Shown one piece after another: positions 9,645 through 16,977 of a stretch of DNA of 64,000 nucleotides. The notes below the pieces were generated by a model. That model was not told where the DNA came from, did no database searches, and saw nothing but the letters and a program-made list of their open reading frames with translations. The position numbers were made by a program, and so were the translations under genes. The DNA comes from Hormiphora californensis (Eukaryota; Animalia; Ctenophora), in the NCBI GenBank assembly GCA_020137815.1, contig CM035360.1, positions 3,038,001 to 3,102,000 of the forward strand, given 5' to 3'. Numbering within the stretch: position 1 is the stretch's first letter; each line of letters opens with the position of its first letter.

Positions 9645-10823
9645 CTACTCGGCTGGTTCCTTCCTTCCCTTTAAGAGACTATCCAGTAACTGGTTAATCC
9701 TGGGGACCATCCTTCTTGGATCGTGAACCAGATTAGCATTAATTAGCGCATTATCAAACAACTGAGCAGCTACCAGACCCGCAATATCAGGACTACCCTC
9801 CCTCAACTCACTCAGTTCCCGGATGATAGGGTGGGATGGGTTTAGTTCCAGTGTCACGTTATCGTGTAACAAATACTTGTAACTTGCCTCTTTCTGCTCC
9901 GGTGGCGCCATATCCAGGTAATGCCGGAGGGTTGTCAGATTTTTAACACTCACCACAGCCGGTTGGGAGTGCTGACGATCAGTGATTTTCACCTCTTTCA
10001 CCGTTTCCCTCCCCAGAACATCTCTCATCCAGGTGGCGAGATCTTTACCGTCCTGATCTGATAGCTGGTCCTCTGTGGATGTGCTGTCTCGGGATTTGGT
10101 GGTGGGGAGATTAGCGTTCTCCGCACTGCAGATCTTCTTATCTTTGTAGGACTCCAATCTGTAATAAAGTACATTTTATATGATAGATGCGCAAAACAAT
10201 TCCGTGCAAGACTTTGGGGGGGTGAACAGTTGAGCCAGTTGAACCGGGGCAAACCTATTCGAGATTAGTTTGTTTATTTGAGTCAATAAATATTGTCATG
10301 TTGTGCACTTCTTTCTTTGCACAGATTGGATCCCCAGAAAGGTCTAAACCAGGAACCGACCGAATCAGGAAATACTGCTCCCTGATTGGCTGATAACCAG
10401 TCACGTGACCTATATAACGAGTTCTGATTGGTTGTTTACTTGTGTCGGTCGGTTCCTGGTGGAGAAGATGGGTTTATCTCCCCCTTCCGTTAGGAACAAT
10501 TGCTGGTAAATTGTTGTTGACTCAACAACCATGCACTGTGGAATAGTCTACGACATAGTGTATGTCAGAGCGCCAGACAACATTCTTATGTGTCATTTTG
10601 GAAAGTTCTAGACACACAAAGGCAAACAAATGAATTCTAGAATTTCCATACGGTGCAGCTGTCTAACGATTGTTCGGTATTCAGAGAATTTTCTAGATCT
10701 ACTTTTCACCTATAATAAATGATCATAAATTCAGATGATACTAAAATTAACGGCCTTTAAATGATTGTGACCGAAGTTTCTAGAAAGAAAATAAATATCT
10801 GTCACAGTGAGCGAGAGAGAGAG

Positions 10824-10916
<93 letters not shown>

Positions 10917-10919
10917 TGA

Positions 10920-11004
<85 letters not shown>

Positions 11005-14000
11005 ACTACCTGAACATTGCAACATCATCTTCTTTGTTGAAAGTTAGGAGAACCTCGTAACCCGCATCACTGAGCGATTCATAGTAGGGAGATGAAAGGG
11101 CAACTTCCCTGCTCGGGGCACACAGGTAGTACACCTAGGGAGGGGGGTTTTAGTGGTTACTAAGGATGTTACTAGTGGTTACCAGGGGGGGTTATTGGTG
11201 GTTACCAGGGAGGTTAGTAGTGGTTACTAAGGATGTTACTAGTGGTTACCAGGGAGGTTACTGGTGGTTACTAGGGAGGTTACTGGTGGTTACCAGGGAG
11301 GTTACTAGGGTGGTTACCAGGGAGGTTACTAGTGGTTACCAGGGAGCTTACTCGGGTGGTTACCAGGGAGGTTACTGGTGGTTACCAGGGAGGTTACTCG
11401 GGTGGTCATTAGTTGTTACTAGGGAGGTTACTATACTCCCCCTCCTATAGAACTGGCGGTGAGAGAAAGGAGAATCATACGTTATTTTTCTTTCTCTCAC
11501 CGCCAGTTCAAAAGAACGGGGAGTTTAGGGGGGTTGCTAAGGGGGGTTACCAGAGAGGGTAGCCCCCCCCCCCCGGAGGTTACCAAAGAAAGTAATATAA
11601 ACCTGTTTCTGGTCCTCCTTGGCACGTTCAATATACTGATCTAGAGATACCAACACACCACTCTCCTCTGCAGTAGACTCAAACCGCAGCAGTTTAGCCA
11701 GGTCCTCCCTCTCGGTTGTAGACTCAGTGGTTACCATGCCAATACGGATAAACCGGCCAAACTCCCGGTAAAACTTTTCAAACTTTACGGGGTCTCTCTT
11801 GCTCTGAAACAGTGATTTGATTAGGTCTGATTATGGGGTCTCTCTTGCTCTGAAACAATACATGATCAGCTCTGATTAGCTAAAGTTTGTTTGTTTGTTT
11901 GTACTTGCTGCGTCTGGCGAGTGACCTGCCCGAAAGTAGCGGCGGCCGCACCGAGCACGCTTATTAGGCGCCCCAGCACGTCCACCACTCCGCCGTAGCA
12001 ATGCCACCCACCAATCAGTTTATGCAGAGCATGTTACTTCAGACGCTCCAGGAAGACCGTGGTCAACCACTGGCGACGCCGAGCGGCGTGAGCCGCACGG
12101 CGTCGACAGGGGTATCACACTACTCCTGGCCTAAATCAATTCCTAAGGGTGATATTAAGCTGGAGCAGGTAACGTTTTGCCTTTGAGAGTGTCTTGAGTT
12201 AAATTTGGTCTGGAACAAGGTAACGTTTTGCCGTTGAGAGTGTCTTGATTTGAGTTTGGTCTGGAACAAGGTAACGGTATCCCTTGGAGAGATTCTTGTG
12301 TTTGGTTTAGTCTGGATCACGGTAACGATTTGCCTTTGAGAGTGGCTTGAGTATAGTTTGGTCTGGAGCAAGGTAACGTTTTGCCTTTGAGAGTGTCTTG
12401 AGTTGAGTTTGTTCTGCAACAATGTAGCAAGTCTTGGACTTGGTCTGGATCAAGGTAACGTTTTCCATTGTGAGTACGGTCTGTCAACAGCGCTAGCTAA
12501 ATATACTAAGAATACGATTTTAATCTCGCAATGGCAACGTTCATGTTTTGGATACAACTGTACATAACAACGGACTGACAAACTTACGACCTTGATGGAT
12601 GTGATGTGTACCGTGACGTGTTGTTGATGAGATGTGAAGTGTGTCAATTTCCAGTAGAGACAAAGATAAACGAAAACGATCAAACACAAATAAGGGGTAG
12701 GACAGATTGTAGGGCTAATGGAATGTAAGATGTTCTAGAAGACAAGTCGGGTGGGACAGATAAGAACATTTGTTAATTGTTACACGCGATAAGCGACTTA
12801 GTGCACCAAAACACAAGGATTGTCTCTGTAGTGGCGTGTTTCACAAAGTCCTCTACTTTGGGACGGGCCAGGGTGGGGGAGGTGGGCGGGGTGGAGGGGT
12901 GGATGGTGGCTAGTACAAGAAAACGAGCAGGTATTGAGTGCGTCAGAGATCAGATATTAGAGGTACTGTGTTGAAAGATACAGAAAAGGAGCACCATTTG
13001 ACAGAATGACTGAACTAGGCGACACGGTTGTGAAGTGATAGATTTAGGATTAAAGAGAGACTTAGACGGGTGTATGTCAGTGTAACAGAGCATTCAAAAT
13101 GAAACAAGAAAACGAGCAGGTATTGAGTGCGTCAGAGATCAGATATTAGAGGTACTGTGTTGAAAGATACAGAAAAGGAGCACCATTTGACAGAATGACT
13201 GAACCAAACTAGGCGACACGGTTGTGAAGTGATAGATTTAGGATTAAAGAGAGACTTAGACGGGTGTATGTCAGTGTAACAGAGCATTCAAAATGAAACA
13301 AGAAAACGAGCAGGTATTGAGTGCGTCAGAGATCAGATATTAGAGGTACTGTGTTGAAAGATACAGAAAAGGAGCACCATTTGACAGAATGACTGAACTA
13401 GGCGACACGGTTGTGAAGTGATAGATTTAGGATTAAAGAGAGACTTAGACGGGTGTATGTCAGTGTAACAGAGCATTCAAAATGAAACAAACATGAAACT
13501 GCAAATGTATGAACTGTTTGTCTTAGCTAAAGTATTTGCCTGGCAGCTGGCTAGACTGTCTTTCAAAGGGTTTGAACAAAACAACTAAAGTATACAACAG
13601 CTAGGATTGTGGACCCTGGGGCCTTGACTTGACGGTTCCTAAATCACAATGTGACTTGTTAAAGTACAACAGTATGGACAGTGTGACGGGAGTGTGTTTA
13701 CAAGAAAACGAGCAGGTATTGAGTGCGTCAGAGATCAGATATTAGAGGTACTGTGTTGAAAGATACAGAAAAGGAGCACCATTTGACAGAATGACTGAAC
13801 CAAACTAGGGGATTGGGGTAGGGCTTAAAGAAAACGACGAGGTATCAGGTGTAAAGGCCTTTCGGCTAAAATGCCATCTTCAGTACATCCTACAACATAG
13901 AGAGTTAATACAACAGGTCACAAAACACTGCCACACACACACACACACAGACCACCAAGAGAATCGCCCTGAATCTTCTCCTCTTTCGTTGGTCTCCACT

Positions 14001-16977
14001 TGGAATCCTCTCCTCACCTGTTAGCCTGTGATGTTCAATCTTGCGCTTCACTTTTGCTTTAGCAGTAAACGTATCCTTTTTAAGCTGCATGTTAGTAGCT
14101 CCAGTGTCCGGGATCACCTCCCTCAATGCTGCAATGTCTCTGTTGGCCTCGACTAATGAGCAGTGTAGGATGATTTTTCGCCGGGCTTCCAGGAGGATGG
14201 CACTGCATTTCTCGGCTAAGTCTTCATAGGCAAAAGATCTACCGACCCTGGGCCACAAGGATGGGAGTATGCTTGATTGGAGTAAGCTAGGATCCAATGA
14301 AGATACCAGAAGGGACCTCTGGGCAACCTTTCTAGCTAGCTGTGTGACCTCTCGTATCATCACTCAAATGTTAAAACGTCCACACTACACTCAGGGGCCC
14401 CAAAACTGGTATAATCGCTGTTCCCTTTCCCCTCTGATTAAGACAGTGGTAGATAACATTTGTGTTTGGAACGAGATGCAGCTCCCCCGAGGAGTGTTGG
14501 ACTGAACCTAGTCGTCTCCTCCCGCCCTCAGCATGGTGTTACACAGCAGATAGGGGATTGGGGTAGGGCTTAAAGAAAACGACGAGGTATCAGGTGTAAA
14601 GGCCTTTCGGCTAAAATGCCATCTTCAGTACATCCTGCAACATAGAGAGTTAATACAACAGGTCACAAAACACTGCCACACACACACACACAGACCACCA
14701 AGAGAATCGCCCTGAATCTTCTCCTCTTTCCACCAAAGAACCAAACTAGGCGACACGGTTGTGAAGTGATAGATTTAGGATTAAAGAGAGACTTAGACGG
14801 GTGTATGTCAGTGTAACAGAGCATTCAAAATGAAACAAACATGAAACTGCAAATGTATGAACTGTTTGTCTTAGCTAAAGTATTTGCCTGGCAGCTGGCT
14901 AGACTGTCTTTCAAAGGGTTTGAACAAAACAACTAAAGTATACAACAGCTAGGATTGTGGACCCTGGGGCCTTGACTTGACGGTTCCTAAATCACAATGT
15001 GACTTGTTAAAGTACAACAGTATGGACAGTGTGACGGGAGTGTGTTTACCTGTCGGTTCAGATAAGATATCATCTTAGCAGTAATGACACTCTTGATCTT
15101 GTTAATAATGACACTCTCCTGCAGGAGCTCCCTGCTCAAATTCAGCGGGACATCCTCACTGTCAACCACCCCTTGAGAAAAGTGAGATCGTTACTGGTTA
15201 CTATAGAGAAAAGGAGAGTTTGTTACATTAACTAAGGAGAGAACAAAAGAGAGTTTGTTACATTAACTAAGGAGAGATTACCTTGTAGGAACAACAACCA
15301 CTCTGGAACAAGTTTCGGGTTCCGTGCTTGGACCATCACCTTCCTGCTATACAGAGATATCCCGAAGTTTCCCATGCTGGAGATATCGATTTGGGGCATA
15401 AACTCAGGAACGTACAGGACACATTTGATACTGACTGGTGTGTCGACCGAGAACTGCATAGTGTACATTGGGGAATCACGCCTGGTTGAGAGGGACTGGT
15501 ATAGCTCAACATGTTCCTCCTCAGTGACCTCACTGGCTCTCCTAACCCAGAGTGGATCCACAGTGTTGACCTGGGTCCCCTCCAGCATGACAGGAAACCC
15601 TACAAAGTTGCTGTGTTTTTGTAACACCTCCCGGATCCGGTCCTTTCTACAGAATTCTTCCGCGTCCTCCCGCAGTTGGATTACTATGCGTGTTCCACGA
15701 GGGATACCAACACCTGAGAAAAGTGAGATCGTTACTGGTTACTATAGAGAAAAGAAGAGTTTGTTACATTAACTAAGGAGAGAACAAAAGAGAGATTGTG
15801 GTAACAACTAAAGAGAGATTACCTTCAGCGATCTCATATCCATCAGCACCATTACTATTCCACACCAGGCCCGGACTACCCGGCACAGCACTGCGTGTCA
15901 TGACTGTCACATGGTGGCCCACCATGAAGGCCGAATAGAATCCAACCCCAAACTGACCAATAATGTTACTCCCCTTGTTGTCCCCAGACTCTGACTGATT
16001 CTTCTTAACAAACTCCTTGGACCCTGACCGGGCGATGGTTCCCAGATTGGCTATTAGTTCATCACGAGTCATGCCAATGCCGGTGTCCCCGATAGTGATC
16101 GATTTGAGGGAGTCAGACAGGGAGATTTGTATGGATGGTTCCAGATCAGGAGACTCTATTTCATCTCCCACTACTTGTCGGTATCGGAGTTTCTCTAGGG
16201 CATCCGCGGCGTTGGACACCAACTCTCTTAGGAACACCTGTGAATAGAAATGTTTTGAGCAGGAACCGACCGAATCAGGAAATACTGGTCCCTGATTGGA
16301 TGTTAACCAGTCACGTGACCTAAATAACGAGTTCTGATTGGTTGTTTACTTGTGTCGGTCGGTTCCTGCCTTCTACTACTACGTAGGATACTAAGTGTGA
16401 CGAATTTAAATAAAGTATTATACCTCACGTTCAGAGTAAAGACTCTTGGCGACAATGTCCAGGAGTTGCCGTGTCTCTGCTTTGAACTCCATCTGTTGAG
16501 GGGCTGCTGCCTCAGAGGAGAGAGGGCGGTGTTGGAAGTTGCTTGTAGAACAGATAACAGTCCTGAGAAGTGAGGGGTGGTGATGATTTGACCATAAACA
16601 TGGAAAATAGCAATGCTGAAATTGAACCGTTGGTCGCCGCGGTGGAATTTGCGGAGACAGTCAAACAGTTCAATGGTAATGTGTTGGGGTCATTATGGGA
16701 TTAGATTGAGGGGGGTCATGTTGAGGGGGGGGTCATGGCAATTGTCAGGGTCACATTGGGGGTCCTGTAACATTAGATGTTAATTGCCAGGAAATAATGG
16801 TCCCTGATTGGCTGATAACCAGTCACGTGACCTAAATAACGAGCTCTGATTGGTTGTTTACTTGGTCCTGTAACATGTTAATTGTCAGGGTCATTATTAC
16901 CTTGCAACAGCGTTTTGTCCCCGGCTGCTTCTAACCCAAGCTGATCGAGACGCAGGTACTCTAATAACCCATCTCAT
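9645..16977 (-). CDS. TRAP1: Mitochondrial HSP90 / HSP75 (TRAP1), 8 exons: 16901-16977, 16424-16562, 15823-16237, 15282-15713, 15050-15171, 11603-11803, 11010-11134, 9645-10158 (2025 nt, 674 aa)
   Basis: Arg/Ser-rich N-terminal presequence; motifs [75 protein letters not shown] and [10 protein letters not shown]. All GT-AG phases are consistent and there is no MEEVD/KDEL tail. Confidence 0.95.
10350..10458 (+). mobile_element. MITE family A, full length (109 bp)
   Basis: 14-bp TIR CAGGAACCGACCGA / TCGGTCGGTTCCTG. Confidence 0.9.
10813..11002. repeat. (GA)n microsatellite in TRAP1 intron 7
   Basis: Direct reading. Confidence 0.95.
11150..11432. repeat. 21-bp minisatellite GTGGTTACCAGGGAGGTTACT in TRAP1 intron 6
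   Basis: About 13 degenerate copies. Confidence 0.9.
12160..12480. repeat. 51-bp tandem repeat, about 6 copies
   Basis: Unit CAAGGTAACGTTTTGCCTTTGAGAGTGTCTTGAGTTGAGTTTGGTCTGGAA. Confidence 0.9.
12914..13807. repeat. Near-identical about 190-bp tandem units (3 full plus a partial); part of the block recurs at about 14735-15049
   Basis: ACAAGAAAACGAGCAGGTATTGAGTGCG... starts at about 12914, 13104, 13298 and 13700. Confidence 0.9.
13846..13892 (-). ncRNA. Minimal type I hammerhead ribozyme motif, copy 1
   Basis: UAGGaUGUA-CUGAAGA-u-GGC(AUUUUA)GCC-GAA-A(GGCC)U-U/UACACCUG: intact core, stems I and II, and a 1-bp stem III with a palindromic loop. Confidence 0.75.
14591..14637 (-). ncRNA. Minimal type I hammerhead ribozyme motif, copy 2
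   Basis: Same core; stem I is CAGGaUGUA/UACACCUG (8 bp with a bulged A). Confidence 0.75.
16260..16368 (+). mobile_element. MITE family A, full length
   Basis: Both 14-bp TIRs present; lies in TRAP1 intron 2. Confidence 0.9.
16788..16863 (+). mobile_element. MITE family A internal fragment flanked by a host direct repeat
   Basis: Core without TIRs between two copies of GGTCCTGTAACAT..GTTAATTG.CAGG. Confidence 0.8.

Follow-up and report, generated by a model that had tools for sequence, protein, structure and literature searches.

The window analyzed here is a 64-kb stretch of DNA from the ctenophore Hormiphora californensis. Its subject is an insert of 923 nucleotides (nt) on the minus strand (14730->13808), lying in an intron of a gene related to TRAP1. 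The insert is very probably a young, internally deleted, and non-autonomous copy of a canonical endonuclease-bearing (EN+) Penelope-like element (PLE), a retrotransposon, in sense orientation to its host gene. It is so regarded because it is homologous to L013, an intact element of the same genome, carries a PLE-type open reading frame (ORF), forms a partial tandem, and is bracketed by a target-site duplication.

The host gene was searched exon by exon, without a joined gene model. Matches to the HSP90 profile (PF00183) occur on the minus strand at 15280-15576, 15053-15184, 11597-11824, and 9657-10199. The upstream ATPase exon has its best solved-structure match in mitochondrial HSP75/TRAP1 (E = 2e-38), with HtpG, GRP94, and cytosolic HSP90 ranking lower, and the host exon is divergent from human TRAP1. 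The intron in question (11825..15049, minus strand) lies between the exons at 15053-15184 and 11597-11824. As it spans the interval from a GTAAAC donor at 15049 to a 3′ end at about 11825, the insert is intronic, and, being on the strand of the flanking HSP90-family exons, it stands in TRAP1 sense. Within the intron it sits inside a host tandem repeat of about 190 nt.

Read along the minus strand, the insert opens with a stretch of about 178 nt, which comes back as the last 180 nt of the 745-nt unit behind it. The direct repeats pair 13806-13947 with 14551-14692 (99% identity) and 13934-13987 with 14677-14730 (100%), at spacings of 745 and 743, and they differ by one substitution and by the length of a (TG)n tract. 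The target-site duplication, TAGTTTGGTTC, is 11 nt long; its upstream copy (14738..14748, minus strand) recurs downstream at 13797..13807 (minus strand), as read directly from the sequence. The paralogous empty site, cgcctagtttggttcagtcattc, is present uninterrupted in a neighbouring unit of the host tandem repeat. Between the upstream duplication and the 5′-truncated copy lies a 7-nt filler, TTTGGTG (14731..14737, minus strand), which has no alignment to the full-length element, the BLAST alignment with L013 beginning at element position 9. The upstream partial copy (14553..14730, minus strand) represents a 5′ pseudo-long terminal repeat (pseudo-LTR), and the full deleted unit ends with a 3′ pseudo-LTR (13808..13987, minus strand). 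Altogether, the insert is a partial tandem of 1.24 units with an 11-bp duplication. Sister copies of the same PLE family have 11-bp target-site duplications too, and L013 and another copy, L014, are likewise partial tandems with pseudo-LTRs. The 46 nt from the second predicted cut site to the 3′ end of the insertion (13808..13853, minus strand) are the 3′ terminus shared by all copies, ending ...CCAATCCCC(TAT), and correspond to the PLE “tail” or internal reverse-transcription start region (a concept found in PMC11167929 and PMC8557442).

The parent element and its protein

A search of the own genome (110.7 Mb in 45 contigs) with the window element gave 12 matches. One of them, L013 (G000:C10:2313800-2319300), contains the 5′ repeat and the internal part of the window element, then 2,458 extra nt, and then the 3′ repeat. 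It is an intact 3.2-kb copy with an intact ORF of 937 amino acids (aa), which opens with the ORF of the window. The window element is 99.6% identical to L013 over 732 nt and 100% identical over 155 nt, and the missing part corresponds to L013 1801-4258 (2,458 nt). In the upstream copy, element positions 9-32 equal L013 1777-1800 and positions 33-189 equal L013 4259-4417, so that this copy begins 24 nt upstream of the deletion junction; the 3′ pseudo-LTR is 100% identical to L013 4259-4413.

The window ORF (13905..14363, minus strand; 152 aa, first ATG at 14360) comprises residues 1-133 of the 937-aa ORF with one substitution (T115P), followed by 19 out-of-frame residues from the (TG)n tract of the 3′ untranslated region. 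All of the reverse transcriptase (RT) and EN regions are absent from the window copy. The 152-aa ORF has no Pfam domain, the search yielding sub-threshold noise alone (TMEM62_C, SNARE), and this stump is not a separate gene, nor is there any basis for a coding role.

A database search with the 937-aa protein retrieved 79 relatives, the nearest named ones being from Mnemiopsis leidyi. Among 15 aligned homologues, RVT_1 is found in 5 and GIY-YIG (PF01541) in 6, and the homologue profile matches a group II intron maturase RT (6me0) with E = 6e-5; a search of solved structures with the single 937-aa sequence returned nothing meaningful. The definitions of the PLE-diagnostic motifs (DKG, the RT motifs, CX4CxxC, and GIY-CxxC-YFG) are those of PMC8557442. 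The RT of L013 contains DKGG at 307, LDV at 478 (motif A), GIPTG at 538, and FIDD at 576 (motif C), in invariant or near-invariant columns of the alignment. Its GIY-YIG region with CCHH contains VIY at 836, CxxC at 842-845, YFG at 849, R860, H864, E916, and N931, all conserved among the homologues, and the CX4CxxC linker is also among the conserved columns. The combination of CX4CxxC and CCHH points to a place for the L013 family with the Neptune/Nematis type.

Hammerhead motifs in four families

The 38-nt motif CTGAAGA-T-GGC-ATTTTA-GCC-GAAA-GGCC-T-T-TACACCTG has two exact matches in the window and no others (13846-13883 and 14591-14628, minus strand), against an expectation of 0.00 in dinucleotide-preserving shuffles. 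In RNA, it has the parts of a type I hammerhead: helix I, in which (C/U)AGG-A-UGUA pairs with UACA-CCUG; the core CUGAAGA; an unpaired U; helix II, GGC/GCC, with G10.1-C11.1; GAA; an A15.1-U16.1 pair which closes the GGCC loop (a helix III of 1 bp); and U17, the cleavage nucleotide. The conserved core CUGAAGA ... GAAA ... U-U is found in both window copies. Motif 1 (14591..14637, minus strand) has helix I CAGG-A-UGUA/UACACCUG, the core, helix II GGC/GCC, and loop 3 GGCC, whereas in motif 2 (13846..13892, minus strand) the outer helix I pair is U.G and not C-G. Counted from the motif matches, U17 stands at 14599 and 13854, with predicted cuts at 14599/14598 and 13854/13853 and a predicted product of 745 nt. 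The helix III strand AGGCCU is self-complementary.

A preliminary description of this locus had placed two direct repeats of about 180 nt, each with a minus-strand hammerhead motif, on the pre-mRNA strand of a TRAP1 intron. The repeats and motifs are indeed there, and the gene and strand are borne out by the HSP90-family exons and the HSP75/TRAP1 match. The cuts and the 745-nt product that it derived are arithmetically right as predictions from the motif positions, and the ORF lies inside this predicted product. Its view that the directly repeated motifs are minimal type I hammerheads of the Penelope type agrees with the core and loop features of four families.

The exact window motif occurs 10 times genome-wide, always in pseudo-LTRs of the window family, and the copies outside the insert lie in full-length or simply 5′-truncated PLEs. 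When the genome was searched at the protein level, three more PLE families came up, with about 69%, 50%, and 48% identity, and a descriptor scan located the same hammerhead architecture about 100-130 nt behind the ORF in each of these three sister families. Helix II and the dimer helix III strand are GGC/GCC and AGGCCU in the window family, GAU/AUC and AGUGCU in the 69% family, GUAGA/UCUAC and AGUACU in the 50% family, and GCUGGAU/AUCUAGC and AACGUU in the 48% family. The helix III strands (A-NNNN-U) are self-complementary in all four, in one of them via G.U pairs, and helix I is different in each family with its pairing kept. Compensatory changes in helices I and II are observed across these four independent families, and the U.G to C-G change within the window also keeps pairing. 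The constant features are the core CUGANGA, the extra U, G10.1-C11.1, GAAA, the 4-nt loop 3, A15.1-U16.1, and U17, that is, those listed as diagnostic for PLE minimal hammerheads by Cervera and De la Pena (PMC4209133). The four variants were parsed with a scripted descriptor, as their MAFFT alignment is not structurally correct; a generic hammerhead descriptor gave 50 genome matches versus 4 in a reversed control. The support for the hammerhead is comparative, being drawn from related sequences. In a ctenophore genome with at least four families of PLEs with C-terminal EN, these hammerheads make up a natural series that displays covariation cleanly, and this may be of modest value to specialists.

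Distant RT relatives are also present in the genome: beside L039 (G000:C5:8628838-8630235) and L040 (C6:8102899-8104296) there are about 40 further loci, with 23-28% identity and long open frames. No hammerhead lies within 1.5 kb of these distant relatives, which may be Naiad-type PLEs or other retroelements.

Formation of the insert and alternative readings

The deletion junction, at which L013 1800 is joined to 4259, occurs twice by alignment to L013, first at 14706..14707 and again at 13963..13964 (both minus strand). A query spanning it has no occurrence elsewhere in the assembly. Splicing was rejected as the source of the deletion, the boundaries not being GT...AG. Two independent or post-insertion deletions were rejected as unparsimonious, given that the upstream copy starts just 24 nt before the junction. 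Because identical independent deletions are implausible and a single target-site duplication brackets the insert, the template must have been deleted before it was copied. This suggests copying from a monomeric template, already deleted, over about 1.24 unit lengths. The order of copying, across two hammerhead sites that were uncut or re-ligated, would be unit positions 614-745, 1-745, and 1-46.

Three template origins could be considered. One is a tandem donor that carries two junctions and is absent from the assembly. The others, which agree with the model put forward in PMC4209133, are a circular 745-nt RNA copied by a rolling circle and hammerhead-cut monomers copied by jumping from end to end. 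It is only tentatively suggested that the 1.24 rounds were made on a single 745-nt deleted RNA, either by rolling-circle reverse transcription of a ligated circle processed by the hammerheads or by jumping between cut monomers. If this is true, the locus would have caught, in a ctenophore, an autonomous PLE in the act of giving rise to a retrozyme-like element, and would provide natural evidence that PLE pseudo-LTRs are regenerated from monomeric RNA at each transposition. The insert is a dated, single-event case of an internal-deletion derivative which was itself retrotransposed, and its duplicated junction bears on the formation of PLE tandems.

The element very probably entered the TRAP1 intron by target-primed reverse transcription. 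The insert is the partial tandem usual for PLEs, in which a 5′-truncated copy followed by a whole unit brings the 3′ region of the element twice, as pseudo-LTRs. In the proposed mechanism, transcription from its own pseudo-LTR, or read-through from TRAP1, would put two hammerhead motifs on one RNA. Going by the literature on PLEs and retrozymes, the two AGGCCU strands could pair into a 6-bp helix III, with cleavage following after U17 at both sites. The 745-nt RNA so released would have 5′-OH and 2′,3′-cyclic phosphate ends and could be circularized by a host ligase, and it could be copied in trans by the RT-EN of intact elements such as L013.

Several observations weigh against the view of the insert as a hammerhead-bearing EN+ PLE copy. 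Searched whole or in three pieces, the 937-aa ORF gives no Pfam domain, and for this reason the assignment of RT and endonuclease rests on the homologues, the profile, and the reading of motifs. The Rfam scans return noise but no hammerhead on the whole window (gathering score) and on 12500-16000 and the sister loci L018, L025, and L034 (E <= 10); this miss says more about the reach of the models, which expect a real helix III, than about the motif itself. Folding energies of the monomers are not significantly better than those of shuffles (z = -0.6 to -1.6); the predicted monomer fold nonetheless forms helices I and II. It has been reported that metazoan PLE minimal hammerheads have low activity in vitro (PMC4209133), and that cleavage is dispensable for in vitro insertion of the Anolis PLE, for which no RNA sequencing (RNA-seq) reads end at the cut site (PMC11167929). 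Sequence comparison does establish the homology and the deletion, as well as the target-site duplication and the motif, including its covariation.

A pyrimidine tract with AG, similar to a 3′ splice acceptor, lies directly 5′ of each hammerhead, at 14635..14649 (minus strand, AG at 14636-14635) before the first and at 13890..13904 (minus strand, AG at 13891-13890) before the second. It could be this signal that is relevant to the host, as a site of spliced-leader (SL) trans-splicing or as a cryptic cis-acceptor in TRAP1 pre-mRNA, in which case the element would gain a capped 5′ end or aberrant TRAP1 transcripts would arise. Such a tract with AG is found 0-8 nt upstream of CUGANGA in all four PLE families, and in Penelope of D. 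virilis the 3′ end of an intron abuts helix I (PMC4209133). At 151 places in the genome, versus 0 in the control, a leader-like sequence ending ...AAATTAATTTGAG stands at a distance of 0-14 nt from CUGANGA. These include the 50% family, joined to the leader exactly at the AG after its pyrimidine tract, and at 24 loci, clustered on C13 (C13:3181663-3195361), the leader is followed by GT. However, no leader fusion was found for the family of the window itself, and the leader is equated with the host spliced leader purely from the genomic pattern. On balance, this explanation seems unlikely; the acceptor-like AG sites of a sense-strand intronic copy may still matter more to TRAP1 RNA than the ribozyme does. 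A sense-strand intronic copy lets RNA-seq test both ribozyme cutting and the effect of the acceptor-like site on the host gene.

As a separate observation, many of the places where leader and hammerhead meet (e.g., L045 at G000:C11:7679500-7682500, and C2:6598709-6598859) form fold-back pairs, and the 24 loci with leader and GT resemble SL RNA genes.

The preliminary description went further and suggested that the insert could act as a functional retrozyme-like unit, self-excising a protein-coding circular RNA of 745 nt from every TRAP1 pre-mRNA or modulating splicing. Two motifs of identical core on the pre-mRNA strand, a self-complementary AGGCCU strand, and an ORF within the predicted product are what such a unit would have, and a derivation from PLEs has been proposed for animal non-LTR retrozymes, whose consensus units measure 51-972 bp (bioRxiv 10.64898/2026.07.22.740005). 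However, the supposed coding content is the truncated N-terminus of a PLE protein with a frameshifted tail and no domain, its 133 and 19 residues having been joined by the 2,458-nt deletion. The genome-wide search showed the 745-nt unit to be a singleton deletion derivative and not an amplified retrozyme family, and the autonomous parent with RT and GIY-YIG, whose existence had been suspected, was found in L013. The low activity in vitro and the lack of Anolis reads at the cut site count against such a unit as well. At 99.6-100% identity to its parent, the insertion is of too recent a date to speak for conservation of any function in the host, and no selection for a host role is visible. A functional unit of this kind is therefore very unlikely, and no evidence of a new mechanism or host function emerges from the analysis.

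Barely credible is an artefact of assembly or a chance match: tandem or inverted PLE copies are a known difficulty for assembly (PMC8557442) and 300 nt close by are present twice with 100% identity, but the repeats of the insert differ in one substitution and in (TG)n length, a target-site duplication brackets it and a paralogous empty site exists, independent copies share the partial-tandem layout, and the motif, with its expectation of zero, covaries across families.

The surroundings of the insert are themselves repetitive. The host repeat that carries the PLE measures about 190-224 nt and is found in the window at 12915-13520, 13700-13796, and 14749-14870; it has at least 133 matches scattered over the genome, and these often form arrays on C8, C10, and C3 whose period is about 450-550 nt. 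A copy of the same PLE family, L007 (G000:C4:7415397-7418549), has a flank homologous to window positions of about 12800-12880 (ctacagagacaatccttgtgttttggtgcactaag...), just downstream of the tandem repeat, and therefore both PLE copies lie in or near one dispersed repeat family. The 300-nt duplicate (13396-13695 and 14744-15043, minus strand, 1,348 nt apart) reflects either a segmental duplication of recent date or a problem in the assembly. It starts exactly at the G of the GTAAAC donor (15049), and a second GTAAAC is therefore intronic at about 13701. A 120-nt repeat of 91% identity occupies 15165-15284 and 15706-15825 (window region 15172-15822), and the next intron region downstream contains a long (AG)n microsatellite (10782-11027) and a 22/12-nt minisatellite (11152-11440).

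Comparison with known systems

PLE hammerheads have been known since 2014, and retrozymes derived from PLEs are under active study; the window insert, as a deleted copy of an EN+ PLE, is an ordinary example of a type already described. With the plant LTR retrozymes (Cervera et al. 2016, PMC4918200) it shares two hammerheads in direct terminal repeats which bracket a circularizable RNA of 600-1000 nt, predicted in the case of the window. The plant elements differ in having true LTRs, type III hammerheads, and Ty3/Gypsy mobilization, whereas the window insert is PLE-derived and of type I.

The likeness to the animal non-LTR retrozymes (bioRxiv 10.64898/2026.07.22.740005) consists in head-to-tail hammerhead units, here 745 nt apart and within the range of 51-972 bp, a terminal origin in PLEs, and the absence of an own RT. 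Unlike these retrozymes, the window insert is a matter of 1.24 units at one locus which keep an ORF stump, and does not belong to an amplified independent family.

The motifs resemble the PLE minimal hammerheads (Cervera and De la Pena 2014, PMC4209133) in being of type I, with an unpaired nucleotide between A9 and G10.1 and with G10.1-C11.1, and in having a very short helix III whose palindromic loop implies dimeric action; they are likewise present in both flanking repeats. Helix II has 3 bp in the window family, in contrast to 6-8 bp in many described hammerheads, and 3-7 bp in the sister families.

Compared with the canonical EN+ PLEs of the Neptune/Nematis type (Arkhipova 2006; Craig et al. 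2021, PMC8557442), the differences are the ctenophore host and the loss of 2,458 nt, including RT and EN, from the window copy; among the published accounts compared, only Naiads, with N-terminal EN, have been reported from ctenophores. As in these canonical elements, L013 has a single ORF with an N-terminal region, DKG, RT, CX4CxxC, and, at the C-terminus, GIY-YIG with CxxC. The partial-tandem pseudo-LTRs with a hammerhead, the target-site duplications, and insertion ends a few tens of nt past the unit boundary are common to both.

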